Below are positions 30,701 to 62,965 of a stretch of 64,000 nucleotides of DNA, in pieces. How positions within the stretch are numbered: the stretch's first letter is position 1; the number at the start of each line of letters is the position of its first letter. Location of the stretch: assembly GCA_004431415.1 (NCBI GenBank), contig QPMI01000198.1:82740-146739 (forward strand), read 5' to 3'. A program made the position numbers and the translations under genes. Origin of the DNA: Cyanophora paradoxa CCMP329 (Eukaryota > Plantae > Glaucophyta). The notes beneath the pieces were generated by a model. The model had not been told where the DNA came from. It made no database searches and worked only from the letters and a program-made list of their open reading frames with translations.

Positions 30701-33700
30701 GACGAGTATCCGGTGAAAGAGGAGTCTCCAGATGCGAAAATACCAATCTGGACTTGGACATTGCCCTTCGGAAGAAGATAGTTTGTGGTAGCAGCAGTTG
30801 CAGCTGCATCGGTGATGCGGCAACCAAGTTGCCAATCGTAGGAGCCAGACGTGGCGCCGTTGTACTCGGGGTTCGGAACGTTACGAGCAATCAAAAACTG
30901 ACCTCCGCTGCCTTCGTGAGTGACGTAACCGTTCGCCTGTCCACCAACGGCGAAGACATAGATATCAATAAACTTGGGTGCAGCTCCGCGAGCACCAGTC
31001 CCGGACCACGTGATCGTGCAGGGAGCCCCGAATCGGCACGATGTCGCAGTGGCTCCAGTCAAGTCAGTGACGCCGATCCTCGCACGTGTTTGCGCTTGGG
31101 AGGGAGCGATGTTCAACTTGACAGGATTGACCAGTACGGCGTTGGACTTGACTTGCGCGAATGCGGTCGAGTCGATGACATTGTTAGATGCCGTGTAAAG
31201 TTGAAGTTCTGCCTGATACCTGCACATCTGTTACGCTTCGATATCTAGAGAAAGACAAAAATTGTTCGTACCACCCGATAGGGAACGGCTTCTGGTTATT
31301 GTTTCTGACAAAACCCACACCTGATCCTGATTGGGTAGTTCCAGTGGCCAGAGCCGCATCTGTAGCCGTTCCGACCGGAGACGAGTCAACAACAGCGTTT
31401 GGCGACGTTCCAGCACGCATGGCGTTGTTTGTGCTCGTAATTCCGGGAATGCTGAAGGTGTAATCAAGCGTAGAAGCGCCATCAATCTTGTTGTAGTTAG
31501 CGGGATCAGTCAGCCGCGCAGCTGTTGTGCCCCGATTGTTCTCGGGCTTCACAGCAATTGGAGTTCTTGCTGTTGCTGAAGCCAAAGCGCCTCCAGTCGA
31601 CAAAATGTCGTCTGCGTGTGGACGCCACGTTCTAGAGCGAAATGAATGAGGAAATTGAACTCACAAAGAGCAAAAGGAAAAGGAAAAAGCAAACACTCAC
31701 ATAGAGGTTCCTGCGCTCGTGCGGCTTACTCCGGCAACGTCACTTGTCTGGATCTTGTTGTTGAGTTCGGCCGGGCCGAGATAATACAACACGATGCGGT
31801 AATACGTTGGATTTCTCGTGTCTGATGATGCACAGGAGCTCAACGACCACGTGAAGGTGACCGAATCTCCATGGACGCCGGTTGCAATCTGAAACATGTC
31901 AAAACAATAAACGAACAACGTCTGTAACAACCTCTCACCCCACATTTCGATGCAGCAATAAATCTGGTGATGTCAGAGTAGTTCCTAGGACTCAACTCCG
32001 CCGGAGAAGTGTCGGGCAGGTCGCCCCACATTCCTTCATCCGTACCCTGATTTCCCAAGTCGTTTCCGTTTGCAAGAGTAGAGTTGTAAGTCGCAGGAAG
32101 GATCGAACGGGGTTCACACACTGCACTGGATTATTTTGGGTGACTTTTGGAATCAAAAAACGGCGCACTGGGGGTGTAAGTTGCTGCGATACACATGGGA
32201 ATGTCGGTCGACATGATGGTAGGCGTTGCCGGGTTCGGGTTGACTTTAGGAGTCCCTGTAGTGATTGCTCCGCGCGCTGCATTTCCGACGGCGGGGGCAA
32301 GGCCAGAACTGGAGTCAAAGGTGGCGGCAACATTCGAAAACCCAAGACGTCTGTTGGAGTCACTGTCTCCCGACGCCTTAGAGTTGAAGTCCGACCATTG
32401 GATGTTCCACATCTCCGCTGCTGAAGACCCCGTAGCAGGCGTGGCGGGGAAGTTGGTAGAGGCGTCCATTAGGCACTCCAGTCGCAGTGTCACGTTCGCA
32501 TAGGTTGTCACTTCCTGTACGCTCGATTTTAACATTTAATTTAAAAGGAAAATTTAGAAGGAAAACTGCAGCGCACATTTCCCGCCTGATTCAACCATCC
32601 GTCGTAAAACCCTTCTGTTTTAGAGTCATATCTGTGAAACTTGCCGAATTGGATCGCGCTGCCGGTATTTTTGAGGTCATTATGTGCGTTATACAGATCC
32701 TCGACGGTCGGGATTGGGATCGATAAAGTTGCTGGCGTCCCAAGAAGGAGACCCGTAATGGAAGTCGATGAAGCGTCAGTTCCAGACTTATTGTCGTCGC
32801 TGTCGGATTTCACTCTGTATATCTCGCCGGCGTGTGTAGTTGTATCCGCATTCCAATTGGTAGTGCCAGTTCGGACGGTCGGATACTTGATGATGCTCTC
32901 AGTGCTACCGCCGACTTTCGTTCTCCAGTGCGCGCGAATTCGGCGGCAAGCAGTTGAAATGGTGACAGCGGGATTAGGACCTACAATACTATTTCCCCCT
33001 TCTGAGTGTCCCTGAAGAAGAGGGTAGATGGCGTTCGACATCCCAACAGTAGCTCCAGTCAGGTTTACAGCAGTATACGGGACCGGGGCGTAGGTGACAG
33101 TGAGAACAAGGGTGTTTTGTCTGTGCAGAATGAGTTCGTATCTCCAAAACAGAATACGGGATAAGCGAGACATTCGCACTCGAGAGGAATGGTGGTGGCA
33201 CTTGTCCCCATTTTCAGTTTCGAGGCAGTGTAGCAAGTATGGGTAACGCCATCATGAACTACAGGCTTTGTTTTTCCAGCATCCGCGGTATGCGATAACG
33301 CCGTAACAGCCCAAGCTGGAAAAAACTATGTCAAAGGCGTCCAAATAAACTTCCTCGAGAAAAACGCACGAGCATAAATGAAGATGTTCGTCTCAATGGT
33401 AAAAAGGACGTCTTTGGTCTGCAGGTCCGTAGAAGTGGACGATACTGTAGTTCCTGCCATGCTCTTGAACACATTCAAACGAATCTGAGAAAAGTGAAAA
33501 GAGGAAGAAGAATAAGGAGAAAAGCGTCAAACCACGTAAGGCCCAGCAAGTGTATGACGAGTTTTGTCGGGGAGAATGATGCCAGGCGGGAGATAGTCGT
33601 TGAATTGATCGCCGTACTGAGCCTTAAACAGAGTAGACGCTTTCGTGGACTCTGTCACGATTGTTGGGGGCACATCCAGGATCTTTGCATCGGATTTGAG

Positions 33701-34276
33701 CATCTTCGTAGTCCACGGCCCGAGCCTGCGTACAGTTTGTCGACACTCCACACCAGGAAAAGATATCGATAAGAACATACTGCCATTCCGACGCAGGCGT
33801 AGTACCAGAGATGTCAAACATAGTTCCACAGTATTCGAAGAGTTCAGCAAGGAACTGCGGTGCTTTAGCGGGCATATTCGGTTCGTCGACGAGACAGTCG
33901 CACCAGATTGCCACGGTAAAGGCTGACTTGATAGCACGAGGCGGTGTTAGCGATTTGATACTCTTTCGATGTGATTGTGATTGTCTGAAGGCTTGGTCAA
34001 CTCATTGCCATCTATACAACCCGCTTTCATGAGCACCTGAGGAGCGAAGACGCGCCAGTGTCCACCGTTGCTGAGCTTCAATGTCGCAGCGTCTTGGCCT
34101 GCGCCGCGTTTGAATATGAGCTGAACGAAACACCGCTCCAAAACCACTCCGCTCCGGGGCTGCATTCGCTCGATTCATGACGCACCATTCCCAAACATAG
34201 CTAGAGACGCAAACAGGACTACAACGAGGGCCGCCCGGCCCGCCACAGCGGCGCCGGCTGCTGTGCGGCCTGCCAT
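24792..34276 (-). CDS. Giant type I membrane/cell-surface glycoprotein (signal peptide, several Ig-like Kre9/KNH-type repeats, CUB domain, beta-propeller-like region, Thr/Ser stalk, one TM, short tail); many exons
   Basis: ATG 34276 MAGRTAAGAAVAGRAALVVVLFASLAMFGNG-QD (signal peptide). Repeated G..(T/C)ITW...(V/I)DLY...G(S/T)Y.W motifs. CUB-like YIEFESNGDDKTADGFELEY. TPSTTTNSTG repeats. TM GVIILACLGIPLMTFCGCVCGWFA, then KRK and a Tyr-rich tail to the stop at 24792. Minus-strand ORFs are contiguous across the interval; a single gene is inferred. Confidence 0.7.
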
Positions 34277-34713: not shown

Positions 34714-37700
34714 CCTCGCGCCCGGCCAGCGCCCCGCGGAGCCGCCCGCCCAGCGCGGGAAGGGCACCGCACGGGCATGCTACTCCTTCTGCAGCGATTG
34801 CAGGCCCCAGCAGCTCTCGCCAGCCGAGAGAAGCGAGCGGTTCGCATGCAGCGAAAGATGCCGAGGCCATGCTCGGCGGAGGCGCGCACCCGTCTCGAGC
34901 GCCTCTTTAGCTCTAGCTAACCCCGCTGGCTGCGCAGAGCTGGCAGCGGCCAGGATCAGGGCGCTGACGGAAGTGCACAACAAGAAGGTCCGGGCGTTGA
35001 TGGGCACGATCCAGCTGTTGGAGAAGCGCATCAAGGATGCAGAGATACAGAACAAGGAGAACAAGCGGTCCAACCTCATCAAGCTACTCGAGGCAAGCGC
35101 GTGTGGGCTCACGGTGTCGTTCGCTTGAACTGATGCACCGGTCCGCACAGCAAGATTTGAAGGACCAGGAGGTCACCATTGCAATCCTGAGACGCGAGCT
35201 CGTCAACAGCGCTCGCCTGAACGATGAGAAGGTGCCCCAGCTGCGCCTGTGCGAATCTTGCGCCCCTGACCCCGCGCGCCGCAGGTGGACGAGCTCGTCG
35301 CGAGGGCGCACGGCTACGCATATGACCGCGTCAGGATTCCGCACCGCGAGCGCCTGCAGAAGGAGGTGACCGCTTGTGCAATCAGGCCCGCCGACCCGCG
35401 TTAGCTGACGTCACGCATACACACAGGTGAAGCAGCTGCAAGCGAAGGCGACGCAGGCGCAGCACGAGGCAATGGAAGCGAAGGCGCGCGTGGCGATTGT
35501 GGCAGCGGAGAAGGCGTCGGTCCCGTCGCCGGACGCGGACACGCGGATCACGTACAGGGAGCACCAGAAGACGGGCGAGCGGGCCTTGCATCGCCCTCTC
35601 TCCGCACCTCTGACGCCTTGTCGGCAGTTGCGCGGATGAAGGACCTGGCGCGGCAAGTGGAGGAGCTGCAGGCGGAGGCGGCGGCGCGGGCGGGGGCGGA
35701 GAAGAAGCTCACGGAGCTGAACACGGAGCTGACCGCCAACCTGCGGCGCCTCCGAGCGTGCGGCCGCCCCTCCCGCCCCGTGCGGCGCTCTCTGACGCGC
35801 GGTGCAGGGCGGAGGAGGAGTGGGCGAAGTGGGCGCAGGAGCGCGAGAAGCTGGAGAGCCGTGTCAACGAGCTGCGCTGGGAGAGCGCCGCCCTCTTCGC
35901 GGAGCGCACGCGGGTGCGCTGGGACGCCAACCCCCCCTTTCTCGCCTGAGACGGGATGTAGGCGGAAGAGGCGGCGCGGGCGGCGCAGCGGGAGGCGGAG
36001 GCGGCGAGACGGGAGGTCGAGACGGCGCTCGCGCGGCAGGCGGAGCTGCAGGCCGCCGCCGCGAAGCAGGCCGCAGCCGCCGCCGCGCCGCAGACGCCCG
36101 CCGCCCCGGCTCCGCAGCCGCCGGCGACGCCGTCTGGGGTGGCCGGTGCCCCCGCGCCCGCAGCAGCAGCCGAGTCGCCGGCCGCGCCCGCCCCCGGCTC
36201 CCGGCCGGCGCCGGCGTCGGGGCGGGCATCGGCCTCCTCCGCGCTGCCCGAGCTGGCGGCGGCCCGCAACGAGGCGGCCGAGCTGCAGTCCAAGGTCCGC
36301 GCGCGGGCGTTCGACACCGCCGCGCAGCCGGGGCCGACAGGCGGCGCGCAGCTGCGGGAGGCGGATTCGCAGCTGGCGGCGCGGGAGACGGCGCTGACGG
36401 CCAAGTGGCAGGAGGCCGTCGCGGCCGCACAGGAGGAGCGCAGCCGCGCCGCCGACGAGCGCGGTGCCCGCCGCGCGCTCCCAGCGAGCCCCCGCCGCTC
36501 ACGCCGCGGCCCCGCGCAGCGCGGCTGGAGGGGAACCTGGATGCGGTGGAGAAGGAGGGCGGCGGCGCTGCGGGCGCAGGTCGCCGAGCTGCGCATCGCC
36601 CTCGCGGCGGCCCAGCGGGAGCGCGACCTCGCCGCCGCCTCTGCCTCGGCCCCGGGCCAGCCGGCGACGGGCCAGTCCGGCGTGCCCGCCGAGGCCCTCG
36701 CCACGGTCCGGCGCTGCCCCTCGCGGCTCTGGACGCTCCCTGACGGCGGCCCGGCCCGGCAGCTGGAGGCGACGGTGGCGCAGCTGCGGAAGCAGCTGGG
36801 CGAGTCGGCGGCGGCGGCGGGGCGGGCGCGGGAGCGCGAGGCGCAGCTCGCGGCCGACGCTGACGCGCTCCGCCAGCAGCTCGCCGCCGCCCAGCAGCAG
36901 CTCCGGTGCCCCGCCGCCCCGCCCCCCCCCTCCCCGCCGCTCCTGACGCCGGCCTGCAGCGCCGCGGCGCCCGAAGCGGCCCCGGCAGTCACGCGGAGCA
37001 TCGCCGAGGCGCGTAGCGTTGCTTCCAGGCGTCTGCCCCGGGGCTAATCTCTCGCTCGTCCCGCAGGTCGACGCGCTGCGGCAGCGGGAGAGGGAGCAGG
37101 CGGCGGCGGAGCAGGAGCTGCGGAAGACGCTCGCGGCGGCGCGCGCCAAGGCGGAGGCGGCGGAGAGGGCATCGGAGGAGGCGCGGGGGCGCGAAGCGGC
37201 GCTGCAGGAGCGCGCTGCCCGCGCCGAGGACCGCGCCGCCGCCCTCGAGCGCCTCCACGGGCCCTCCTCCGCCCAGACCGACGTGCGTTCCCGCGCTCCC
37301 TCGCCGCCTCGCCAGTGTCTCTCGCTTTCTGAGCCCTTGGCGCCAGGGCTCCCAGCGGACGCGGCCGTCCGGCGCGCGGCACTACGACGAGGTGCGCGGT
37401 CGTCCCCGCCGCCGGCGCCGCGCCCTTCGCGCTGACCGGCGGCCCGCTGCAGGAGGAGCGCCCGGGCGGATGGCAGCAGCAGGCGGCCACGCCGGTGCAG
37501 GCCGGCGGCTCCGTGCGGCGCTGCCGCGCATACACCTCGGGCTCCTACGCGGAGGTCGGCCGGGCCGAGCCGAGCCGCCCGTACCAACCCCGCTCACGGG
37601 CCGCCCGCAGGAGGAGCCGCAGAGCGCGCGGCGCGGGCGCGGCGGCGGCTTCGCCTCCTCCGGCGCCCCCTCCCAGCAGCGCGTGCGTGCCCGCCGTTCC

Positions 37701-38007
37701 TGCCGACGCGGCCCCCTCACGCCGACCCATGGCGCCGCAGGAGCGGGCGGGGTACGAGGACGAATCAGGGCCCGGGCCCGGCCTCGTGTACCTCTCCACA
37801 GGCGCCTTCGCCGCCGGGCCGGAGTGCGCGTTCCCTTGCCGCACCCCACGCGTCTCGCCCCTCGCCCCCGGCACTAACGGCCCCCGCAGCTCGGGCCGCG
37901 CGGCGTCGCGCCGCGGGAGCGACAGTGGTGCCGGCCCCCCGGCGCGCCGGGCGCACCCTGCGGGGGAGGGGCTGCGGGCCTCGGACAGCCTGCCGGCACC
38001 GGACAGC
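34714..38007 (+). repeat. Right arm of the inverted segmental duplication (partner 8494-12009)
   Basis: Matches the reverse complement of 8494-12009, with an internal deletion of about 215 bp near 37940. Confidence 0.95.
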
Positions 38008-43264: not shown

Positions 43265-44097
43265 ATCTTCAGATTCGCCGCGGCGCCGAGGTTAAATTCC
43301 CTTCCCCGGACCCAACTGACGCGCACGGCAAGTCAGTGGCCCTTTATTTCAAATCTTCATGATCAGAACCTTAGACTCAGTGTGACTCGGATCCGGAAGG
43401 CCTTGAAGCCTTGATCATGACCTAGGCCTTCATGATCATGATCATGATGCCAAGACTCGAGGATGATGCCACGGTCAGGGCTGGGCCATGATGATCATGC
43501 CATGGCCATGATGAACTTTCGGAAGGCCGGCCGGCGGGCCGCCGGGCTTCCGAAGTTCAAGGCTTCAGGCTTGGAACTCATCCCGGAGTCCGGGCCCTGC
43601 CACTGGGCCAGGCTGCTGATCATGATGTGCTGGCCATGGATCGCCGAGTCGTGATCCAATGTTCCGACCGTCGGACTCGGGCGACGATCGCGATCGCGAC
43701 TCGGCGAGTAGACCGATATCATCGCCGAGTCGGATCACTGTCAGGCCCTGACTCAGTGAGGCCCACCCGGTCACGGGTGACGGGAGGCAATTGCAACCTA
43801 CCAGGCCAGGCTCGGCCCTGGCCCAGTGGCAGGTTGAACCCCATCATGGCATGGTGCCACGGCGAACGTCGGACCTAGCCTCGGCTTAGCCTAGGCCTCA
43901 GGGCCTCGTCTAGGGCCCTAGGCCGGTCAGGACAAGCAGGGGGGCTCCGCCCCCCCGCACCCCCCCAGTGTTTTTTTGGGTTCTTTGATTTCTTGTGGTT
44001 TTTATTCTTCTTCTTATTATTATTAAAAGGGCCACTGACTTGCCGCGCGCGTCAGTTGGGTCCGGGGAAGGGCATTTAACCTCGGCGAATCCAAGAT
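43265..44097. mobile_element. MITE-like non-autonomous element bounded by 62-bp (to ~80-bp) inverted repeats
   Basis: 43284-43345 (CGCCGAGGTTAAATTCCCTTCCCCGGACCCAACTGACGCGCACGGCAAGTCAGTGGCCCTTT) is the reverse complement of 44026-44087 with 2 mismatches. The interior is non-coding and palindrome-rich. No clear TSD. Confidence 0.65.
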
Positions 44098-46713: not shown

Positions 46714-47681
46714 TCACTCGTCCGTCCCGCGGATCTTTTTGCGGAGCTGCATGTCCTTGGGCTGGATTGTGATGCTGCGCGCCCCCGGCGGTTATGTGCC
46801 CCTGTACGGGGCGCTACAGAGTTTTGGAGGGGGTGGAATATTAATGGGCGGCATATATACCGCTTGGCATGGATCGCGAGGAGGTTGCTCCCCTCGAACG
46901 TCTCGATGGCGTAACTGCGTCTCGACGATCAGTTGCAGAGGCGGCGTTCTATGAACTTGCAAATTTCGCGAACTGCTCAGTGGCCTCGCGGAGAGCGAGG
47001 ACGGCCTGCCGGCACCAGCGAAGAGCGGTGGTGTCGGTCAGCCTCGCCTCGCGAAGCTCCTTCAGGACATCCTCGGTGATCTCCTTGACGGTGCGGGTGA
47101 ATGGGGCGAGCGCAATGATGGGTTCGGTTCGCTTCTGCCACTTGCGAATCTCCCTGCGAGCGGTGGATTCACTGAGCCTCTGATAGTGTTTATTGCACTT
47201 GAGACAACATCAACGTACCGGAGGGCAACCGTGCCTCCGCAAAGGCGTGCGCGGTTATAAACAAATTTAAATCAGATAGAGAAACATTATGAATGATAGT
47301 CACTTCAAAAGGCTTTAAGATAGTAAGATCTAGAAAAAACGTTAATTTAGAAAAAACGTTAATTAAAATATAAGATCTAGAAATGATAGTTGAATTCCGA
47401 CTCGGCGAAGTTCGAAATCACTGACTAGAGTCACTTTAGTCACTTTAAAGTTAACCCTGCTATAGCGCTAGCTAGGCCTAGGTTCGCATACTGATCATGA
47501 ATAAATATAAAAGTGAACTCGGACCTGGACGGTAACGGTGTGGCTTCTTGACGCCTCCTGCTGCAGGAGCCGCTCGACGGGCCGCCTTTGATGCGAGCTT
47601 CCGCTCGCCCATGTTTGCGAATCGCTTCCGCGGGGCCTTGCCCCCCGTGCTCTTTTGCCCCGTGTGCTTTGTCCGTGCCAT
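46714..47681 (-). CDS. Divergent histone H3 variant, 155 aa (H3-like tail with K27R/S28A; cenH3-like histone fold)
   Basis: Exons 47681-47525, 47234-47219, 47153-46974, 46914-46861 and 46774-46714 splice in frame to [155 protein letters not shown]. All four introns are GT-AG; the intron 1 acceptor is a weak GAG. Confidence 0.9.
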
Positions 47682-47820
47682 CTGGCTATAGCTTGATCGG
47701 GCCGAAAGGCCCTGCGGCCTTGCCGGAGTGCGCACACGTGGGTGCTCTTATTTATATATTTGTATACACATGGAGTTTTTGCGTCGTGCATTTCAGATTC
47801 AGAGTCAAGAACTTCGGAAA

Positions 47821-49852
47821 TCAAGGGGCGTCGGACTCGGATTTCGAGCCGTCGGCGTCCGAGGCCCCGGGCCCGGCCGCCTTGATGCGAAAGACGTTCT
47901 TCGGCATGCGAACGAGCGGCTCGCCCTTGCTGTCGACGAGCTTCTTCACGCGCTCATCGAGCCGCTTCTCGATCTCCTCGAGCGCCGCGTCGTCGGCGCG
48001 CTGCAGGTTGGGAGAAAGGCGACAAAGTCCGCCGGGCTGACGCCGTCGCCCACCACGCGCGCGAGGCCCGGGAGGCGCTGCAGGACGCGGGCGCAGGCGG
48101 CCAGGTCCGAGTAGGCCTTGGCGCACACCGAGCGCTCCTCCAGGCGGAGGCCGCAGGCCTCGAGGATGTGGTTGTAGCGCGGCTCGACGCGGTCCCGCCG
48201 AAAGTAGCCCCAGCTGCGGGGTTCCGCCCGTTGGCCTCGACGTAGCGCTCGTACGCCCGAGGATGCCCGTCGAGGCGAGGAGGAGGCAGCGGATCCGCTC
48301 CCGCCCGCGTGCTGGGCCCGCAGGAGGAGGGCCCGCCGCGCCGCGGGGTCCCCGTCGAGCTGGATCCCGACGAGGGCGGCGTCGACGCCGCGCCGCAGCC
48401 CCCGCTCGAGCTCACGGAGGGAGAGAGTCCCCTCGCTCCTCTCCGAGACCGCCTCTTCCCCTCGCCGCCCTCGCCGCCACCGCTGCCGCCGCCGCCGCCG
48501 CCGCCGCCCTCGTGCTCCGCGTCCGCATCCGAGCCCGAGTCCGACGTCCCCTCGCCGTCCCGATCGCGATCGGCCGCCTCGAGCTGGGTCTCGAACTCGG
48601 CCCGCTTCTGCTCCTCCCACTCGTTCATCGGCCCGTCTTCGCCGGCGGGCTCGCCTCCGCCTCCACCGCCGCCGCCCGCGCCGGGGGCCTCGGTCTCCTC
48701 GCCCTCGCCCTCGCCCTCGCCCGCGCCCTCCTCGTCGTCCTCCTCGTCAAAGTCCTCGCGCTTGCACGTGTAGGCGTCGTAGAGGATGCGCTGCAGCTTC
48801 TCGCTTTCCCACGGCGGCCGCCGCTCCGACGAGGCGGGGCGGCGCTGCCGCTTGGCCGGCGGGCCCTTGGGCGCCTCGATGGCCAGCGGCGGCTCCTCGT
48901 CCTCGAGCTCGTCCTTGTCCTGGGCGGCGGCGGGGGCCATGCGCCTCGCGCGCGTCGCCCGGGCCGCGGCTGCCGGCGCCGGCGCCGGAGCTCCCTTGGC
49001 CGCCGACGCCGAGCTCCCCTCGGCCGCCGTCGAGGCCTGCGAGGCCCCGGCGCGCCCCGAGCGGCGGGGCGTCGACGCGTTCGAGTCGGTCCCGCCCTTG
49101 TGCGCGGCCGCGGGCTGGGCGGCCGCGGGGGAGCCCGCGGCAGTAGGCTCCTGGGAGGCAGACTCGGCCGCTGGCGCCGCCTGTCCCCTGGACGAAGAGG
49201 GCCCCGCCCCGCCGCTCGTCGGGGCGCGCGGCGGCACGAGGCAAGCGCGGCGAGCTGGATCGCGCGCGAGACGCCCTCGGCAGCCGTCCAGGACTCGGGG
49301 CGCTCGGCCTCGTGGACAAAGGCGCGGTAGGCGAGGTAGCCGTCGACGCGCGACGAGGGGACGAGGTGGAGAGGGTCGGGTGCGGCTCGCTGCACGCATT
49401 CTGGAGCATGGGGCACTCGACCTCGCCCTCTTCGTCTCCGGCCGCGCCCGTGGGCGCCAGAACCTGCGCAGAAGGGGACGTCGAGGGGGGCGGGGGGTAC
49501 GGTGGGGGTATGGGCGCGGGGCTGGCACCTTGGGAACGCAGGCGAGGCACACGAGGCCGTGGCGCTGGAGCAGGTGGCCCGTCGGCTCGTCGTTGAGGTC
49601 GATCGCGCGGTCGAGGTCGCCCCCGCCGGCGAGCTCGGCGATGCTCCTGGCCAGGCATGCCGGCACGTACGCCGGCGGGAGGAGCCGCTCCGCAGCGCAG
49701 ACGCTGCACCGGGGGCGCACGTCGAGCTCCAGCCAGGCCGAGATGTACTTGGGGCGGGCGATCCGCACGGGCCGCGCGTCGATCGGCGGGGCCCCCGACG
49801 CTGCCTCCTCCTGGGAGGACGCCGCCTGCTTGCCCTTGGCCTTGGCCCCCAT
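47821..49852 (-). CDS. RING-like zinc-finger protein with long acidic/Gly-rich disordered region; a few frameshifts
   Basis: ATG 49852 (MGAKAKGKQ..). CSVC..C..RHGLVCLACVPK, intron 49528-49464, VLAP..VECPM..C. NLS-like PPAKRQRR, acidic tract, and a helical C-terminus ending ..SESDAP* at 47821. Two to three single-base frameshifts are needed. Confidence 0.55.
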
Positions 49853-50164
49853 CGAGACCGCGGGACCCGTGTTCCCGGTACCCTCCCCGCTCGAGTCGAG
49901 GGGGTACGCAGGCCCTTTCAATCCTGCACGCGGGAATGAGACGGACGGCGTGCGACCGTCGGACGTGCAGCCATTTATGAATTCGGGAGATGCACGCCCC
50001 TCTCGCTTTTCCTTGGTGCGCATGCGCACCTGCGAACCGCGCGGCAGCGTCCAACAGGCCCGCGTGCGCTCGGCCTCTAGATCTGTGCCCGTTAAGGCCG
50101 GTGCGCCTCGCGACTCGTTCTAGCGGCGGCAGGCTTGTACCCCCGTTCACTTCACATGGACCCG

Positions 50165-50960
50165 AAATCGGCCGGGCTCTGGTCGGGGAGGGGGGGGGAA
50201 GGGGGGAGGGGGGGAAGCGCGGCTAGGTGCGGGTCTTGCAAGGCGTACCCGGCCCTCTCGACTTGCCGGATTTCGAGAGCGGTTTCCGAAGTGGCTCCGT
50301 ACCCCTGACCATACGGTACATAGACCTGGAATCGGCCGAGCTCTGGTCGGGGGAGCTCGAGTAGGGGGGGTAGAGGGTGAGGCCGCAAGGGTACCAGACG
50401 GACAAGGTCGCAAAAGACGCCGTTCCCCACACCCTCGGCAGAGCGACCAGAGCTCGGCCGATTTCAGGCCTAGAAAGAGGGGGCAGAACGATCTGTACCC
50501 CTCTTTCGCCGCCGACCAGAGCTCGGCCGATTTCAGGCCTAGAAAGGGGGGCAGAACGATCTGTACCCTTCTTTCGCCGCCGACCAGAGCTCGGCCGATC
50601 CCAGGTCTAGAAGAGGGGGACAGAACGATCTCGGCCTTTATCTTGAGGCTGTACCCCCCGATCGCGTGGTGCATCTAGACCGGGGATTGGCCGAGCTCTG
50701 GTCAGTGCACGTGGTGGGGGGGGAATTCAAAGGGGTTATATATAGAGGGGAAGGGTTGAAGGAAACCGGTATACCCCCCTCCCCTCCCCTCCCCTCCCCC
50801 TCCCCCCCCCAAGGCCCGCAGACTGCAGAAGATCCAACCAGAGCTCGGCCGATTTCGCGACCAAATATAAAGGGGGCAAGGTTAAGAGAGCGCGTCAAAG
50901 ACCACTACCCCTCAGAATCACCACAACTAGACCTGGAATCGGCCGAGCTCTGGTCAGCGG
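50165..50960. repeat. Left array part A: dispersed copies of the CAGAGCTCGGCCGAT core, including a 68-69-bp tandem repeat x3 (50444-50636) with an internal hairpin
   Basis: Unit CGACCAGAGCTCGGCCGATTTCAGGCCTAGAAAGAGGGGGCAGAACGATCTGTACCCCTCTTTCGCCGC starts at 50444, 50513 and 50581; stem GAAAGAGGGG/CCCCTCTTTC. Further core copies in both orientations near 50168, 50331, 50686, 50838 and 50938. Confidence 0.9.
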
Positions 50961-50982
50961 GGGGAGAGGGGATCCCGCCCCC

Positions 50983-52100
50983 TAATCGGCCGAGCTCTGC
51001 GCAGGGACTGCTGCCGCCAGGGCTGCGCGGTGCCGGACGCTTCCTGATCCGTACCCCCGCCCGCTCCCCCCCCCTCCTCTTCCTCCCCCTGCACAGAGCT
51101 CGGCCGATCGCGGCTCTATGAGCGGCGGCGGCAGAGGTGCGTACCCCTCTCTGTCTACCTCGCCCCCTAATCGGCCGAGCTCTGCGCAGGGGGCCGCTGC
51201 CGCCGAGGGTAGGGCGATACCGGACGCTTCCTGATCCGTACCCCCGTCCGCTCCGCCCCTCTCCCCCTTGCCCCCCCTGCACAGAGCTCGGCCGATCGCG
51301 GCTCTATGAGCGGCGGCGGCAGCGGTGCGTACCCCTCTGTCCGTTTTTCGCCTCTCTCTCTCGTCCCGTAATCGGCCGAGCTCTGCGCAGGGGGCCGCTG
51401 CCGCCGAGGGTAGGGCGATACCGGACGCTTCCTGATCCGTACCCCCGTCCGCTCCGCCCCTCTCCCCCTTGCCCCCCCTGCACAGAGCTCGGCCGATCGC
51501 GGCTCTATGAGCGGCGGCGGCAGCGGTGCGTACCCCTCTGTCTGTTCTCGCCCTCGCTCTCGTCCCGTAATCGGCCGAGCTCTGCGCAGGGGGCCGCTGC
51601 CGCCGAGGGTAGGGCGATGCCGGACGCTTCCTGATCCGTACCCCGCCCGCTCCGCCCCTCTCCCCCTTGCCCCCCTTGCACAGAGCTCGGCCGATCGCGG
51701 CTCTATGAGCGGCGTCGGGAGAGTGCGTACCCCTCTGCTTAGTTCTCGCGCCCTTTGTCCCGTAAATCGGCCGAGCTCTGCGCAGGGGGCCGCTGCCGCC
51801 GAGGGTAGGGCGATGCCGGACGCTTCCTGATCCGTACCCCCGCCCGCTCCGCCCTCCCCCTCTTTCTCCCCCTGCACAGAGCTCGGCCGATAGCGGCTCT
51901 ATGATCGGCGGCCGCACAGGTGCGTACCCCTCTGCCTGTTCTCGCCCTCTCTCTCGCCCCGTAATCGGCCGAGCTCTGCGCAGGGGGCCGCTGCCGCCGA
52001 GGGTAGGGCGATACCGGACGCTCACCTTGATCCGTACCCCCGTCCGCTCCGCCCCCCCCCCCTTGCCCCCCTGCACAGAGCTCGGCCGATCGCGGCTCTA
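50983..52100. repeat. Left array part B: six tandem ~185-201-bp units, each containing a 23-bp inverted repeat
   Basis: Units start at 50983, 51168, 51369, 51568, 51763 and 51962. Each has ATCGGCCGAGCTCTGCGCAGGGG ... CCCCTGCACAGAGCTCGGCCGAT around a conserved spacer. Confidence 0.95.
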
Positions 52101-52453
52101 CGAGGCGACGGCGGCAGGGTTCGAAAATCCCCCAGGCACCTCGCAACCGCATGTCGATTGTTTGAAAGAGAAAAAAAACATTCTTGATCACGAAAATGCC
52201 CTCACGCGCGCTCTGGGGCCGGCGCCGGCGCCGCGCGCGCCAAACTGCAGCGACCCCACTCGAGAGCCCCGCGTGCATTGAGCCTGTACGTCCACTAGCT
52301 CGAGCTGGCTCCCACGGTTATGCGTAAAGCCGGAAACGAGAGCACGCGCGCGTGCGCGCGTCTCGGTTCGATTCTCAGTCCCACACCGCACATGTACACG
52401 TGCACAAAAAACTCCACGCACTTTTGATGCGCTCGGCACAATATACTCTCTGC

Positions 52454-53470: not shown

Positions 53471-55281
53471 CTATACGGTAGGCTGCGAGTCGCCGGGGAA
53501 GAACGTGAGCGTGTAGTTGTGCCGTTCGCCTTCGACGGTGCAGTAGCGGTCGCGCAGCCACTCGCAGGTCGGCTTAAACGTGTTGTGCTGCAGATGGGTG
53601 CTGATCGACGCCGCAAACGGGCCGCCCTGACCCGTCAGCCTCCCGATCTCCGACCACTGGATGTACCGGACGACGCTGAACGGCGCGGGGGCGTCCTGGT
53701 CCTCTCCGAACGCGAGCGCCGCCACGCCGTGCAGTCCGACGGCTCCCAGCGGGCGGATGGAGCGCGCGTCCAGCAGGCCGCTGGCCACGGGTACCTCGAA
53801 ATACTCCAGGTCGCGGGCGTAGGGCGTCACGGAGACGAGAAAGGGGCGATCGACGCCGGTTCCTTCGAACTCGAACTGGCCGGCGGCCTGGTAGATGAAG
53901 TTCCAGTCGCCGACGGGCGTGACGCAGCCGTACGACTTGCCCTCGCAGGGCATGTGCAGCTCGATCATGGTGGGGCGACCAGCGCCGCTGCCAGCGAGGT
54001 AGTACATGTACATGGACGCGCTCCGGATGCTGCCCACGTTCCGAGCCGCGTGGAGGAGCCAGTTCTCGCCCAGACCGACGGCAAAGGCCTCTGCGGGCTC
54101 GGCGCCGCAGACGATCCACCAGCCCTGGCGCGCAGCGCCGCCCGAGAGCCGCACCGATGCGATGAACTCGACAAAGGCCTCCTCGCGGGCGGCGGGTTCG
54201 TCGACGCTGGAATCGTCCTCCATCATGTCGACTTCGTCCGCACCGCCCATCTCCATACCGCTGCGCAACACCTTGACCCGCACCAGCACGGCGTTGCCGC
54301 GCGCGTTCCACGTCAGGCTCGCGTCGCACTCGTGCAGGGGCACGTCGCTCCAGTCGCCGAGGGCCGAGGGGTCCCCGGAGCCGTCCACCTCGGCGAGCTC
54401 GTGGGAGAGCCGCGCGCGCGCCGCTGTCGAGTGCAGGGGGCCGGCGTCGGCCGCGGGCGCCGCGGCGGCGCCCTCTGCAGACTCGCCAGAGCCCACGAAG
54501 CGGACGAGGACGCGGCCGCCCGCGGAGCCGCCGTCGCCGGCGACGCTGCAGATCGCGACGCGCGAGGCGTCGGGAGAGGGGCGGCACGCCACCACGCCGG
54601 CGACCGCCGCGCCGACGTCGACGGTCGAGACGCCGCCGTCGGCGGACCAGACGAGCCAGCCGCGCTCGCCGCCGAGCACGATCGTCCCGTCGCCGGCAAT
54701 GGAGACGGAACCGCGAGCAAAGTCGCGGATGGGGAACCCGGCCGGGATCTGCAGGGCGTCGCCGAACCCGCCCGGCCCGTAGCGGACGATGGCGCCTCGC
54801 GGGGCGAGGTCCTCGGCCGCCGCCGCCGCCGCCGCCGGGGGAAGAGGATGCACACCCAGCGGCCCTCGCTCCCGGGCTCTGTCGGGAGGGCAAAGGTCGC
54901 GTCGAGGCCGCCGAGGCGCGACGGGATCGGGATCTCCGCCCCGCGACCGCGCCCCGCGATGAGACGGAGGCGGGCGCCGCGCGACGCGCCGGGCCCTCCG
55001 AGCAGCAGGGCGAGCGCGTCGTCGACGGCGAGGGCGTCGAACCAGCCGCTGGAGACGTCCGAGGTGCCGATCGCAAAGGAGCGGGACTGCTGGCACACGG
55101 TGAGCATCTTGAGGCGGTCCTCGCGCCCGAGGTAGTTCAGGATCGCCTCGGACAGGTCGGCCGGGAGGGATTCCATCCGTTTGCAGAACTCGCTCTCCGC
55201 GGCGCCGTGGACAAAGGGTTTCTCGACGAGGCGGGGCGCGCCGGCAGCGGTCATCGTGGCGAGGTTTGCGTTGGTGGCCAT
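53471..55281 (-). CDS. Intronless F-box protein with C-terminal beta-propeller-like domain, ~600 aa (one frameshift near 54840)
   Basis: F-box pattern MESLPADLSEAILNYLGREDRLKMLTVCQQSR in ORF 54313-55281. Beta-strand blades (VSIAGDGTIVLG, CRPSPDASRVAIC, LTWNARGNAVLV) in ORF 53471-55096. Confidence 0.7.
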
Positions 55282-55489
55282 CGTCGCCGTAGAGTCCAGT
55301 TAATGTTCGTGACCTGCGAAAGAGGAGGAGAAGAGAGTGAGCGCAGCGGCGCGGGCGAGGCTTTTATCGACGCCGAGGCCCGATTCGAGCGAAAGAGCGG
55401 CGGGCAAAAAAAAACCAAGTCGGGAGAAAGCAAAAACGCAGCGGCGCGCTTTCAAAGGACTCGGCGAGGCCGCGCATCGAATTTCGCAT

Positions 55490-58400
55490 TCACGCAGGGG
55501 GAGCGGGGGTAGGTGCCGGGGCGGGGCGGGGGGGAAGGGCCAAGAGGGGTACGCCAAAGTGCTGAAAGGTGGAGCGGGGTACGAAGAGGAGCATCTTCGC
55601 CCCGCACGAGCGCGGCCCGCGGGCGACGCGCGGGCGCGCGAGGTCCTCGGGCAGGAGCCGCGCCGCGCCGTCCACGAAGAGGCTGATGCCCGAGGTGTCG
55701 GAGCCCGTGCGCGCCACGTCGATTCCGGACGAGGGAGCGTGCGGCGCTCCTGGGGAGGTCCCGCGCAAAGATCGACGTGTACGCAAACCCGACGCAGGGT
55801 CCGGCCCCTCCCGCCCCTCCACGATGGGGCACCACTCCGAGGCGCGCTGGGCGGGGCGCCGGCGGCCTCGGCGAGGCGGCAGAGGAGCCAGGTCGCGTCC
55901 TCGGTGGGGAGGGCGGGAGACTCCTCCGCGGCGGGGAAGCCGAGGCCATCCCGCGCCGCCCCGTCGTCCATCGCGAGGGCGGCGCGCGCCAGGTCCGCGC
56001 GCAGAGCGCCGCGACGTCGGGTCGGCGCCGGCGCCGAGGGCGGCGCGATCGGGGCGAGGGCCTCGGGGGCCTCGGAGGCGGCGGCGCGCGCCAGGACCTC
56101 TGCGTAGGGCGACGCGCGGGAGGCCCCGTCCCCTCCTCCTCCCCGTCGCCGGCCCCGCGCCAGCAGCGGGCGGCGTCCTCGCCGAGGACCGCGCGCGCCG
56201 CCTGCGAGAAGAAGACCGCCGAGTGCACGCCCGACTTGAGGAGCCGGAAGACGCGCTGCGCCGCGTCGCTCGGGCGGGGGCGGGCCCCCGCCTCTGCCGG
56301 CGCGCCCGGGGCGCCACCCTCGCCGCCCTCGCCGCCGCCGCCGCCCGCGCCCGCCGCCCGGAGCTTGGACTTTGGATCCTGGACGAGCGCGATCTGGAGG
56401 AGCGCACGCCGGCCGCCAGGAGCGCCCCGAGCGTCGCGTCGGGCGGGACGTCCCGCGGCCGTCCCGATCGCGCCCGTAGAGGCGCAGGCCGAGGAGGACG
56501 GTCTCGGGTCGAAGCAGTAGCGCGTGCGCTTGACGGTCCTGCGCGCGCCGCCCCGCACCACGCGCCGCGCGTCGGCCGCCGCGACGAGCACGCCGAGGCC
56601 CAGCTGCTCCGCGGCGTGGACGACGAGGTCGTGCAGGAGGCGCCGCGCGCAGTCCCCGATCGGGGAGGGGCGGCCCCCTTGTTGCGCTTCTCCGGGCGGA
56701 GGCACTCGAGCTGCAGAGCTCGGCGCACTGCCAGCGGAGGCGTCGGCGCGGTACGCGGCGATCGCGAGTAGGGATCGCGATCCGCTCCCACGCCGCGCGG
56801 CAGGCGTCCGCAAAGAGCCGCCCGAGGGGCCCGTCGGTAAAGATGCCACCCTCCTCGATCGCCTCGCCGAGCCCGCGCAGGCGCGCCGCGCCGCAGTCCT
56901 CCGGCCCCTCCCACGTCGCCCAGAAGAGGTAACGGAGGCCGCCGCGACGTCGCTCGCCGCCGCCGCCGCGCCGCCGCCGGGCGGGACGCGCGCGCCGAGC
57001 AGCTCAAAGAGCCGCAGGGCGCTCTCAAAGGGGCGGCGCCGCTCGCGGTGGTCCGGGAGGAGCGTCGCGCTCTCCTCGTCGGGGGCCGCCCCGAGGCGAG
57101 GTACGGGAGGGTGTCGAGGGCGAACCGCTTGGAGAGGCGGAAGATCTCCGCCGCGGGCTCTGCTCCGAGAGGCGGACCTCGGCGACGCCCACCTGCTCGG
57201 GCCGCAGCCCGAAGCGCGCGGCGGCCTTTTCGCGCTTCCAGGCGCGCCGCGCCGCGTCGGAGACCTCCACCGTGGACGTCCCGTACTCCATGGCCCCCGG
57301 ATCGCCTTGGCGCAGTCGTAGCCCAGCAGCCGCGGCGCGGCGACGATGGGGAGGAGCCGCTCGCGCGCCTCGACCTCGGCCGCCAGGGGACGGCAGAGTC
57401 CGAGTACCCCTCCGGCATCCAGGGAGGCCCCCCGCCGCCGGCGCCGCCGGCGCGCTCGGCCCGCGCGCGCGCCGCCCTTGGGCTTCTTCGGGGGCTGGGC
57501 AGGGGGTACACGTAGAGGCCCTCGTTGCCGAGCGAGCGGAGCTTCAGGTGAAACGCCAGCATGGGGCACGCGTGCGTCGCGTTCCGGAGCGCCGTGCGGA
57601 CGGCCCGCACGCGGAGGTAGTGCTCCTCGGTCGCCACGCGCCTCTCCGCGGGGAGCCGCTCGTTCCACGCGCGCACCGAGTCCACCAGCTCGCCGTAGAT
57701 CGCCCGCCAGTCGACGGGGGCGTGCAGGGGCCGCCCCTGCCGGTCGGGGAGGGGGCCTTGCGGGGAACCGGCAGAAGAAAAAGGCGTCGGGCCCGATCAC
57801 GTGACGGCGGCGGCGGACGAGCTGAAAGCCGGCGTTGACGTCGGCGGTCCGCCCCTCCTCGATGTAGGCGACAAAGTTGGCGGCGGCCCGCTGGAAAAGT
57901 CGGTGCCCTGGGCATCGCGTAGTTGGAAGCGTAGCAGAGGGCGGAGCAGACGTAGTCCGAGTCCGTCATCGTCTGCCTCGCGCGCCGGTCCGCGTCGGCG
58001 TACAGGAACTCGCAGCGGCGCCCGGAGAGCCGCATGTGGCGCCGCACGATGGACTCGATCTCCCAGAGGGCGCGCCGCGTCGAGCAGGCGATGTAGCCGA
58101 CCTCGCCGGCGAGGAGCTTGGCGGCGATCACGGCGGCGGCGTAGCGAATGTCGATGGCCGTCCAGCGCAGGCGCGCGTCGTTGCTGCCGCGCTTGAGGTA
58201 CGAGATGACGTCGCCCCCGGGCGGCGCGCGGCGTAGAGGGCGGCGTCCTCGTCCAGCAGGTCGGCGTCGGCGACGATCACGAGCGCCGGCGCCTCCAGCG
58301 CCCTGTCGAACCAGGCGACCGTCTGCGCGTGGTGCTCGGGCCCCTTGAACGGCCCGCCCGTCGTGAGGGTCGTGAGGGCCCGCGCCCCTCGTCGACGATG

Positions 58401-61400
58401 ACGACGTCAAAGTCGCCCTCGAGCCGGCGGCCGCTCTGCACCGTGCACATGACGAACGAGGCGTCGGCGAGCTCCTCGGGGCGGGCCTCCTTGTAGACGG
58501 TCCAGGCGACCGGCACGCGCTCGCCCGACGCCGAGGGGTAGGAGAGGGCCGCGAAGCGGGGGTCCTTGACGAGGATGTCGGGCTGAACTCGCCCCGCCGT
58601 CACGTAGAGGACGCGGGGCGGCGCGCCGGGGACGCTGGGGAGCCCACGAGCGTCGGGTCGTCCAGCACCGCCTGCAGGATCCCCGGGGGCCCGGCCCCGC
58701 CGCGCCCTCGCGGCCCCCCACGCACGTCTCCGTCTTGCCGCTCCGGTCTCTGCCCGCACAAAGATCGTCTTCCTCCGCCGTCGAGGCGCGCGAGGATGGG
58801 GGCCGGCTGCAGAAGCGCTGGGCCCCGGGCCCGCCGGCTCGTCGATGTCGATCCAGCGTCGGGCGACGGGATCAAAGTCCGCCGGGATCGCGAGGGGCCG
58901 GGAGAGCTCGGGAGGCGGAGGGCAGCGCGCCACGTCGCGAGGTCCGGCAGCATGGCGCGCAGCCGCGCCGCCGGCCCGCCGGTCGCGCCGTCCTCGAGGG
59001 GAAAGGAGCCGGGGCCCGACGCCGCGGGCCGGACGCGCCGCTCGGGCCGCCGTCGGAGGGAGCGCCGCGCGGCGCCGAGCGTGCGCAGCCACGCGACGAC
59101 GGCATCGAGGTAGTCGACGGCGCCCTGAGGGAGCTCCGCCCAGTACGGGTTGCGGGCCGTCGCGCCAAAGGTGCCGGCGCCCATGGACTTGGCCTGCTCG
59201 GGGAAGAGCCGGAGGGAGAACATGTCCACCTCGTCCTCGCGAGGCGGAGCTCGGTCGCGTCGTCCTCGCCGAGCTCCAGCGGCCCGCAGGCCAGCGCCCG
59301 CCGCACGCCGCCGCGCCGCACGCCCGGACGCGCACCTGACCGCGCTCCTCGCCTCCCCGCTCGTCTGGTCGATGAAGAGCTTCCCTTGCGGTGACCGCAG
59401 CTCCAGCAGGGACGCGGACAAAGTAGGAGCGGCCTCGACGTGCGAGGCGACGCGGACGGGGGGCAGCGCCCCGCCGGCCGCTGCGGGAGGGCGGGGGCGG
59501 CCGGCGCCGGCGCCGCCCGCGCGCACCGTCCTGGGGCCCGTCCCCCTGCCCCCTCCCCCTCTGCCGCCGCCGCTGCCGCCTGCGCCTCTGCCGCCGCCGC
59601 CGCCGCCGCCGCGCGCGCGAGCCTCTCCGCGAGCTGGAGGCTCCGGTCGGCGATGCGGGCGACGGTGGCGTGGAGCCCCAGGAGCGCCGCGTCGGCCTGG
59701 GCGAGGGTCGAGGCGCCGCCAAAGGCGCCCGGCTGGGCCCACGCGAGGGCGCCCAGGAGCGGCTCGCCGGCGCAGCGGAGCGAGTAGCAGTGCGCCGTCG
59801 CGGCGAGGACGCCGGGGATGCGCTCTCCGCCACCCACATGCTCGTCTCCACGCGCTCGTGGTCCGGCCGTGGGGGCAGAGCTCGCCCCCGTCCGCGTCGG
59901 GCGGCGAAACAAAGTGGGAGATCGAGGGGCCGCCGCGGCCGCGCGGCCGCGGCGGGGGCGGCGCTCCAGCCCCGCCCGCGCCCGCCCCGCACGCGAGGAG
60001 CCCGAGCGCTCCACCACGCCCTCGCTGATCGTCGCCTCGTCCTCGGCGTCCCGTCCTCCGCATTCCCGCCCTCCTCCTCCTCCTCCTCTTCTCGCCCTCC
60101 GATCGAGCGTCGGCGGCGCCGGGGGCCCGGGGGGCGCGCGGGGCTTGGGCGGCGGAGGCGGGCGCCGTCCGCGGGGCCGCCACGTGGAGGGTGTGCTTGG
60201 GGCGATCTCGCGCGCGAGCTCGCGCAGCCAGCGCCACTCGTCGCTGTTCCACGCGACGAGGAGCGGGTCGGGCCGCGTGGCGTGCAGGCGGACGTCGCCG
60301 CGATCGCCGCGTCGTCGACGGCCTCCAGGGGTACCGCCACGGGGTAGTAGGAGGTCCAGCGTGGCGGTGCTCGTCGGAGCGGCAGCGCTGTTGACGCGGA
60401 ACGGCGCGAGGTCCAGGACGCCCTCCTTTCCAGCTGCTCCACCATCGCCCGATCCCGCGCTCCTCCGCAAACGGGACGACGACGCGCTCAAAGCCTCGCG
60501 CCCCTCCACCGTCCCGCCTTGTACATGCCGGGGACGCGCCGCGGCCAGCGGCGCGCGTGGCCTTGGACCAGAAGGAGCGGCGGAGGCGGCTCTTCTCCCC
60601 TGCGGGACCGACGGTCGCGCAGCGCCGCCGCCGAGTCCTCCTCGAGCCGCTTGAGCTTGGCGCGCACGATGCCCACCACTGGTCGAGGTCCTCCTTGGCG
60701 TACACGGCGGCGCCGGGCCCCTCGACCGCCGCGACGAGGTCGGCGTCGCGCACGTAGACGTGGAAGCCCTTAAGGCCGAGAAGACGACGAGGACGGCGAC
60801 GCCGCGCGCCTGGAGGGCCGGGCAAAGTCGCGCGCGCGGCGGGCGACGCCGAGGATCTCGGGACCTCGGTCCAGTAACTGGGCGAGGGTCTCGCACCGCG
60901 CCAGCACGCCGGCGAGGTACTCTTTCTTGGCGTTCTTCAGCTGCTCCCTCCGAGCGAGCCGCCCTCCAGCGCCTCGGGGAAGCGGATGTTGGGGACGTCA
61001 AAGTCAAAGACGTTGAACGCGCGGAGGGTGCGCCGGCGCCGCCCGCGTGCTCGACGAGGATCTGGGGCGAGATCTGGACGACGGCGCGGCGCGCGACCGG
61101 CGACTCGAGCCTCTCCACGTCGGCGGGCTGCAGGGGACGGCAAAGATCGCGTCGCGCGCGGCGCCCTTGCGCGGGTTGCTCTTGACGAGGACCGTGGTCC
61201 GCACGATCTGGTTCGCGGCGGGGGCGGGAGGGGCGCGCCGAGGGCGGCGCGGTCGCGCCCGCCGGCGCCTTGTCCTCCATCTCGAGGTCGCCCTCTGCAT
61301 CGGCGCCGGCGCCTCCTTGGGCGGCAGCGGCACCGCCGGCGGTGCCGCCCCTCGCGCTTGGCCTGCGCCGCGGCGGCGCACGGCGGCACCGCCTGCGGTG

Positions 61401-61522
61401 CCGCCCCCTCGCGCTTGATCGTGACTTGTGCGCTGCGTTGCACGGTGGCACGCCGGCGGTGCTACTCCGGTTCGGTCGCCGGTGGGACCCTCGGACGCAT
61501 CGTGGTCCGCCGGGCGTTTCAT
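55490..61522 (-). CDS. AEP primase-polymerase + UL52-type Zn finger + herpes UL9/OBP-like SF2 helicase fusion, ~2000 aa, intronless, many single-base frameshifts (pseudogene or assembly error)
   Basis: AEP motif I AFNVFDFDV (~60995-61020), motif II VVFS/GLKGFHVYV (~60750-60790) and possible motif III GVLDLAPF (~60400-60430). Zn finger LCPHGR/DH...HCYSLRC (~59770-59880). Walker A TIFVRAETG/SGKTE (~58725-58770), RVLYVT, VMCTVQS, Walker B FDVVIVDE (~58388-58412), UL9-like LVIVADADL, YIACST. Confidence 0.8.
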
Positions 61523-62149
61523 CGTGCAGTCGAGACTGACGCCCCGACCGATGGCGCCTTCTTTTATGGTTGGAGCGCCGCCGGCCGCGAGTCGCTCGAT
61601 TCGGTCCGTTGGGCCGAATCGGCGAGAGGGGAGGGGATGGAGGGGGGTGGGGTGGGGGGGGGGGAAGGGGCAAGAGCGAGGCGGGGCAAGGGAGATTTCA
61701 ATCTCTTGCATTCGCACACAACACATGTACAACTACAATGAGTTTCACATCGCCAACATCTCTCCGACTAGATACTACTGAGGATCGTCGCATGCTGTGT
61801 TTTAGAAACGATGCAAAATGAACGAAAGGTTCGAGGGTTTTCGTATCTAGCTAGCTTGCCGCCCCAGTAGGTTGGGCTACTGGCTCTCCCTCCCGTCGCC
61901 GCCGCCGTCGCTCCCGTGATGGTGTCGTGTCCTCCAATCCCGTCCTCTGGGGATGGCGTGAGGGAAGGGGCAGAGCGTAGAGGGAAGGAGGAGAGAAGGG
62001 AGGGATTGGGGGTAGCGGGCAAGGTGAGGGAGGGGGTACGGGGGAGGGGGAGGTCAAACGGCTAAATACCCCCGGGAATTCTCTAGGAGTAGAGGGGTGC
62101 CCCCACACCGGCCCGGCTCCCCCCGTACCCCCGCCAGCACCCTCTGGCA

Positions 62150-62775
62150 ATGGCCTCTGCCGCTGCGCCCGCGCCGAGCGCACCTACGACCTCGGACGGT
62201 GGAAGTATCTGGACGGCACGCCTACGACGACCGCCCGGGGCGTGATCGCCGCGCCGCTCGCCAGCTCGGCGTCAAGTCCAGCCGCATCGGTGAGCGAGAT
62301 CGTCGGGCGCCCGGCCGGGGGCGACCCGCACCGCGACCCTCTGCCCCGCCCGCGCCGGCGCCTGGGCGCCTACGAGGCGGTCGGCCGCGCCGCCCACGTC
62401 GCCTGGACGTGCACGAGCAACCTGTGGCGCCCCGCCGCGCGCGCGCGCTCGACGACCGACGCGCCGGTGCGCGCGTCTGCTCCAGCTCCCGTGCCGCCGA
62501 CGCGCCTCGGGTGCGGGCACGTCTTCTGCCTCGGCTGCCTCCTCCCGATCGCGCCGCTCGGTGCCCCCTCTGCCGCGCCGACCCGGGCTCGAGATCGTGC
62601 CGATCCGCCGGCGGCGCACCGGCGCCTCTACGAGGCGGTCGCGAGGCCTACGCGGCGCGGCTCGCCGAGGCCGCCGCGGGGCTGGACCCGGCCCTCCCGC
62701 GGGCCCTCTGCGCGCGCTTCGTCGATCCCGCTGGCTCTCCCCGCCCGATCGAGACGGCGCCGCGCGAGCGCGTGA
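62150..62775 (+). CDS. RING-HC (C3HC4) finger protein, intronless, frameshifted; 3' end uncertain
   Basis: C..C, then PTRLGCGHVFCLGCL and ARCPLCRA (62470-62580). ATG 62150; divergent from the primase-helicase gene. Confidence 0.65.
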
Positions 62776-62965
62776 GCCGGCGCGCGCCGCGCCTCGCGCC
62801 TTGCCCTTGTATGTGTGTGTATATATACGTACCCTGTGGCCTGCGCAGGGCGTTATATAACATATATATATCTCGTACCGAATTTGAATTGTATTTGAAT
62901 TATATTAGAGGGGGGACGCGTACCCGGGATCGGTGCGGTTTTTTTTTCCTTGCGCGCTCGTCGCT

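Follow-up and report, generated by a model that had tools for sequence, protein, structure and literature searches.

The H3-like gene on the minus strand of the 64,000-nucleotide stretch of Cyanophora paradoxa CCMP329 DNA analysed here (the window) sets an H3-like tail on a cenH3-like fold, and the question it raises is whether it is an unusual cenH3 or a novel variant, the two possibilities that the initial annotation placed side by side. The presence of an H3-like gene at this locus is not due to chance: H3 scores 60.5 bits at best by tblastn, where 500 resamples matched in composition reach no more than 24.6, the AG-GTVALR-GT micro-exon pattern is found a single time in the 128 kb of the two strands of the window, and exon 3 scores above the cut-off of the Pfam Histone family. 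With exon limits set from splice-site anchors and each exon translated separately, five exons of compatible phase give 468 nt, encoding 155 amino acids and a stop (Table 1), in agreement with the uninterrupted 155-residue H3 first proposed.

Table 1. The H3 variant gene and the adjoining block (positions in the window)
Feature	Position	Strand	Remarks
Intronless, frameshifted gene without assigned family	47821..50030	-	same strand as the H3 gene; its end is about 140 nt upstream of the H3 ATG
TATA-like box	47750..47758	-	about 70 nt upstream of ATG; putative, from sequence
Exon 1	47525..47681 (157 nt)	-	start codon and H3-like tail (residues 1-43 and the insertion); phase 1 at its end
8-aa insertion after K18	47601..47624	-	related insertion in paralogs P0002 and P0233
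K27R and S28A codons	47571..47576	-	sequence and alignment
Intron 1	47235..47524 (290 nt)	-	GT...GAG; 35% GC
Exon 2	47219..47234 (16 nt)	-	micro-exon encoding G-T-V-A-L-R, the start of H3 alpha-N; R49 kept
Intron 2	47154..47218 (65 nt)	-	GT...CAG
Exon 3	46974..47153 (180 nt)	-	alpha-N end, alpha-1, loop 1, alpha-2 start
Long loop-1 segment	47024..47077	-	18 aa against 7 in H3; K79 site absent
Intron 3	46915..46973 (59 nt)	-	GT...CAG; junction also in P0135
Exon 4	46861..46914 (54 nt)	-	alpha-2 end; T107S, C110L, H113 kept
Intron 4	46775..46860 (86 nt)	-	GT...CAG; junction also in P0135
Exon 5	46714..46774 (61 nt incl. TGA)	-	loop 2, alpha-3, D123 kept, A127R, acidic C-end of H3 length
Repeat array, 68-nt and ~200-nt units	50167..52117	.	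20 copies of a 15-nt motif, both orientations
F-box gene	about 53500-55300		weak match
Long intronless, heavily frameshifted ORF (~6 kb)	55450..61500	-	primase-like and helicase-like motifs by eye
RING gene	about 62100-62800		weak match

All four introns begin with GT; those numbered 2 to 4 end in GCAG, and intron 1 ends in GAG, the rarest acceptor class in a crude host set (7/74). No AG in intron 1 besides this GAG gives a stop-free frame into exon 2 or exon 3, and skipping of exon 2 was rejected because a compatible acceptor is absent. The junctions between exons 3, 4, and 5 are identical in the public model P0135 and recur in the models of the other near-identical copies. Introns 1 and 2 are predicted to be spliced out, and expression of the gene is unproven, since GAG is the sole possible acceptor of intron 1 and since the public RNA-seq-trained models of all four near-identical copies of the gene lack exons 1 and 2. 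The rare acceptor, these incomplete models, a long fold branch (0.66-0.8), frameshifted neighbours, and the lack of any full-length window-gene protein among 5.8 billion clusters would suit a copy that is silent or decaying as a pseudogene, whatever the role of the family; we treat this as a real possibility but a doubtful one, as the exons are free of stops and frameshifts while the adjacent genes carry many, the micro-exon keeps the exact H3 sequence, and the core structural residues are kept. A CpG-decay test of constraint was dropped because intron 1 shows no depletion of CpG (o/e 1.49), and an NCA excess was discarded because it was based on one control ORF and came without a matching T|G excess. 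If intron 1 is retained (47478-47681, minus strand), translation of exon 1 would run on to a stop codon and yield a 67-residue peptide that is almost pure H3 tail.

Relative to canonical H3 and H3.3, the tail is identical at 36 of 43 aligned residues, keeps K4, K9, S10, K14, K18, K23, K36, and K37, and differs by R8Q, K27R, S28A, and the eight-residue insertion. The fold, about 54% identical, carries Q68T (codon 47096-47098), F84W (codon 47015-47017), and T107S, and the stretch between I74 and L82 holds 18 residues against 7, an extension of 11. The substitutions, kept residues, insertion, and loop extension had all been listed initially, and all are present by alignment. The fold also carries Y54W, R63A, K64L, C110L, and A127R and has lost the K79 site; the likeness to H3 extends to alpha-N, to R49, K56, R83, H113, R116, T118, and D123, and to the length of the C-terminal end, which is acidic. 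The canonical set of an ARKS motif with K27, Q68, F84, T107, and a seven-residue loop segment is thus not present. Database searches were made exon by exon, with the proteins P0135 and P0161 standing in for the fold. The AlphaFold model of P0161, a relative with two substitutions (47 sequences, pLDDT 86), predicts an intact histone fold in which alpha-1 is lengthened by about 6 residues and followed by a 12-residue loop; the top Foldseek matches of this model are nucleosome structures, and viral histones match far more weakly.

The gene is one of many, which the initial annotation did not notice, nor its near-identical copies and virus-like surroundings. A HMMER search with exon 3 found P0135, a C. 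paradoxa model (EukProt EP00741, tig00000849_g4783), to be 100% identical; this protein is entered twice, and so is P0161, giving four near-identical copies. The best genuine match to the tail is another C. paradoxa protein, P0002, and profile searches added P0143/P0192, P0193/P0221, P0233/P0384/P0385, P0140/P0144, and P0154. The resulting family has at least 15 annotated loci on different contigs, in about seven subfamilies that are near-identical internally and 41-71% identical in the fold between one another. All members have W84, have lost Q68 and T107, and have a loop segment of 17-18 residues in place of 7; the annotated tails are H3-like (29-37 of 44 residues identical), with R49 present. 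The family forms one clade, without the divergent C. paradoxa histone P0311 that is considered below, with support of 98 (SH-aLRT), 93/86 (34 rows), and 100/99 (14 rows). Neither protein and profile searches nor searches of IMG/VR and the JGI metagenomes found a member outside C. paradoxa. A literature search, which reached few subscription papers, found no description of these genes, and the supplements of three Cyanophora papers contain no expression or methylation data on them; they apparently make up an undescribed, lineage-specific family of non-centromeric H3 variants.

The position of K27 is occupied by R in the window gene, P0002, and P0193 and by K in P0143 and P0233. As some members keep K27, its loss does not define the family; it varies, unlike the loop and W84, which all members have, and the loop is therefore the defining trait. 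To our knowledge, the Arabidopsis variant H3.15, which also lacks K27, has no long loop 1. The initial emphasis on escape from Polycomb is weakened because P0143 and P0233 keep K27 and because a survey of C. paradoxa, based on an older assembly, did not find core PRC2 (PMC5405695). In that survey, the H3K27me3 signal was inconclusive, and the closest C. paradoxa H3 keeps K27 (PMC5405695).

In the tail tree, the window gene groups with P0002 and P0233 (93/99), with which it has G7-Q8 and the insertion in common; in the fold tree, it groups with P0143, P0140, and P0154 (83/90). This disagreement suggests that paralogs may have exchanged sequence near intron 1, with AU tests (p 0.12 and 0.128) compatible with a single history. 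The public models of most members are fragmented, and those of P0154, P0221, P0192, and P0144 contain retained-intron stretches at sites where the window gene has no intron. Judged from retained-intron stretches in public models, intron positions appear to differ between subfamilies.

The block in which the gene lies is non-host in character. Host-type branch-point/acceptor motifs number 33 in the first 42 kb of the window, which is intron-rich host DNA, against 0 between 42 and 64 kb. The 15-nt motif of the repeat array recurs in three further copies at 63184-63535, a total of 23 where 0.05 are expected, and the palindromic arrays resemble replication-origin repeats. In the 6-kb ORF, we recognised what we take to be primase and UL9-type (origin-binding) helicase motifs; Pfam, PHROGs, NCBIfam, PDB, phage tblastn, and a single-sequence fold prediction gave it no identity. 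Among the frameshifted ORFs of the window, none was confirmed as a capsid, polymerase, integrase, or transposase gene, and no viral hallmark gene was found in the visible 21 kb of the block, which continues past the window end. Rfam gave no match, no element boundary was found, and searches of viral contigs, which reach close relatives only, returned no close relative of the window gene. A weak NCBIfam capsid-fusion match (E 0.013) was put down to chance, being absent from the ten long ORFs tested. By its gene content and repeats, the block looks virus- or transposon-derived.

Elsewhere in the window, 62-nt inverted repeats that are 97% complementary and 680 nt apart (43284-44087) probably represent a MITE, and the region at 42.8-46.4 kb is rich in the short palindromes CTAG, GATC, and CATG. 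Within the host part, a multi-exon host-type gene that looks coiled-coil-rich lies in a 3.2-kb inverted duplication (8786-12009 and 34714-37948, 94.5% identical). A very large multi-exon minus-strand gene at about 25400-34000, with 50-56% GC in a window of about 69% GC, has one weak, sub-threshold match to Kre9/KNH Ig-like domains and is possibly a surface protein.

We suggest, with about even confidence, that the window gene is a copy of a Cyanophora-specific, non-centromeric H3 variant family that has spread with virus- or transposon-like repeated DNA. The family is probably carried by mobile DNA. The element-borne reading is favoured by the non-host block, by arrays far above chance, by the weak RING and F-box matches, by the fused upstream sequence that P0140 and P0144 share, from which we conclude that neighbours were duplicated together with the histone, by the divergent H3 genes found elsewhere, in a contig with pPolB and a Sputnik-type capsid gene and in intronless, orphan-dense contigs, and by the mirusvirus and giant-virus precedents (PMC12768974, PMC12344493). 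Against such an origin, the gene has four introns and its neighbours have none, it lies to the left of and outside the repeat arrays, a viral relative was not found, and the contig of P0002 also carries ordinary host genes. C. paradoxa is haploid and about a third of its assembly, 34.7 Mb, is duplicated sequence (PMC6704402); a high copy number is therefore not in itself a sign of mobility.

Mirusviruses commonly have histones and RING proteins as well as spliceosomal introns (PMC12768974). Cyanophora is not named in the text of a mirusvirus host survey. C. paradoxa itself carries methylated giant-virus insertions, and methylation affects 21% of its genes, most of which are silent (PMC12344493). 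At L007:10001-10453 and L008:4857-5309 (P0375), a Sputnik-type major capsid gene is only two genes away from an H3-like gene whose tail is divergent; L007 also carries pPolB and is a virophage- or Polinton-type element with its own H3. Single divergent H3 genes also occur in a giant-virus MAG (L001) and in intronless, orphan-dense contigs (L003-L005 and L009-L011; P0277, P0278, P0305, P0328); several of these have W84 or lack Q68, T107, or K27, such that these changes recur beyond centromeric histones. Viral H3 genes (those of mirusviruses, skiaviruses, L001, and L007) resemble the window gene in being single divergent genes, several of them H3-tailed and with W84 or without Q68 or T107, in their association with RING genes, and, in mirusviruses, in having introns. 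They differ in that none has a loop extended by 10 or 11 residues and none falls inside the Cyanophora clade, and the window block is only putatively viral.

If expressed, the protein of this putatively element-borne family would be expected to pair with H4 and replace H3 in nucleosomes, since R83, H113, R116, T118, D123, and the alpha-N residue R49 are kept and the fold is predicted to be intact. Its tail could still take marks at K4, K9, K14, K18, K23, and K36 and would be closed to methylation or acetylation of K27 and to phosphorylation of S28. The longer alpha-1 and loop 1 remove the K79 site and would present a changed surface, one that may not be recognised as H3 by the chaperones, remodellers, and silencing readers of the host. 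Its most likely use would be in packaging element DNA, or host chromatin during element activity, such that it is poorly silenced by the host; the window copy itself may now be silent.

The genes could instead be replacement H3 variants of the host, segmentally duplicated and resetting chromatin in some state such as stress, encystment, or a cryptic sexual stage. The spliceosomal introns, the contrast between exon GC3 (78%) and intron GC (35-59%), the conservation of tail lysines across subfamilies of such divergent fold, and the extent of duplicated DNA in a haploid assembly all speak for host genes, and H3.15, which lowers H3K27me3 after wounding (PMC10980418), provides a precedent. Expression and function have been shown for H3.15, whereas in Cyanophora K27 is lost in some members only and PRC2 may be absent. 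With the non-host character of the block, the fragmented models of most members, the failure of one survey to find core PRC2, and intron positions that appear to differ between subfamilies weighing against it, we place this explanation on the unlikely side.

A bolder version of the element-borne reading is that families of endogenous nuclear DNA viruses or giant transposons of Cyanophora each carry their own intron-bearing H3 variant, H3-tailed and with an extended, centromere-like loop 1, for silencing-resistant nucleosomes or for segregation through the centromere pathway; we think this unlikely.

The remaining question is that of cenH3. A hydrophobic C-terminal end that contacts CENP-C and the replacement of R49 are supporting traits of cenH3. 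The published criteria are a long loop 1, replacement of Q68, F84, and T107, and a highly divergent tail (PMC4359364). A survey for a separate cenH3, suggested by the initial annotation, found P0311 (tig00000123_g6917), a C. paradoxa singleton with Q68K, W84, T107A, a loop extended by 3, K49, a hydrophobic last residue (F), and a tail too divergent to be aligned with that of H3 (16 of 44 residues identical). We prefer P0311 as the candidate for the true C. paradoxa cenH3 because it has the full published profile, divergent tail included, and is single-copy; a literature search found no paper naming it.

The window gene resembles cenH3, CENP-A, and Cse4 in its longer loop 1 (loops of 15-17 residues occur in basidiomycete Cse4) and in the replacement of Q68, F84 (to W), and T107, and differs from them in its H3-like tail, R49, acidic C-terminal end, and membership of a multi-copy clade. 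What had been called classic cenH3 diagnostics are indeed present, yet they are not specific: W84 and loss of T107 are seen again in H3-tailed proteins of probable viral origin, P0277 and P0278 combining H3 tails with W84 and A107. In fold trees that cover cenH3 rows other than those of plants and red algae, and in which these rows are themselves not monophyletic, AU tests reject neither family plus P0311 (p 0.118) nor family plus H3 (p 0.097). The former result, together with the fold residues, the best PDB sequence match of P0135 (a chain of yeast Cse4, with a negligible lead), and the disagreement of tail and fold trees within the family, whereby tails may be exchanged, would allow the family to consist of cenH3 paralogs that have multiplied, or of cenH3 folds joined to H3 tails by recombination at the intron-1 junction, with a role at centromeres or in competition for them. 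We consider this improbable, given an H3-like tail, R49, and an acidic C-terminal end that lacks the hydrophobic contact to CENP-C, a position in these trees apart from every cenH3, a separate single-copy candidate, and at least 15 loci. The fold diagnostics would also suit the ordinary single cenH3 of the species with an atypical tail, but this is largely refuted, as the window gene belongs to a separate clade with four near-identical copies and 11 relatives and P0311, single-copy, fits better. Of the two initial possibilities, the novel variant is thus retained and the unusual cenH3 is disfavoured, and we do not file the gene as cenH3; the cenH3-like residues of the family are most likely parallel acquisitions in this part of the surface.

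Tail-swap chimeras likewise combine an H3 tail with a centromere-type alpha-1, loop 1, and alpha-2. The engineered H3-CATD (PDB 5Z23) has the same arrangement; the family differs from both in being natural and multi-copy, and neither cenH3 descent nor centromere targeting is implied.

H3 is among the most conserved of proteins, and cenH3 is routinely called in new genomes by rules based on loop 1, Q68, F84, and T107; in C. paradoxa, at least 15 genes satisfy these fold rules and yet are unlikely to be cenH3. Whether the fold suffices for centromere targeting has so far been asked mainly by engineered chimeras, and C. paradoxa, which is available in axenic culture, would allow a direct test of this with an H3-like tail. 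If endogenous viruses or giant transposons do carry these genes, selfish DNA would be entering the conflict over silencing by the host with an H3 variant of its own.
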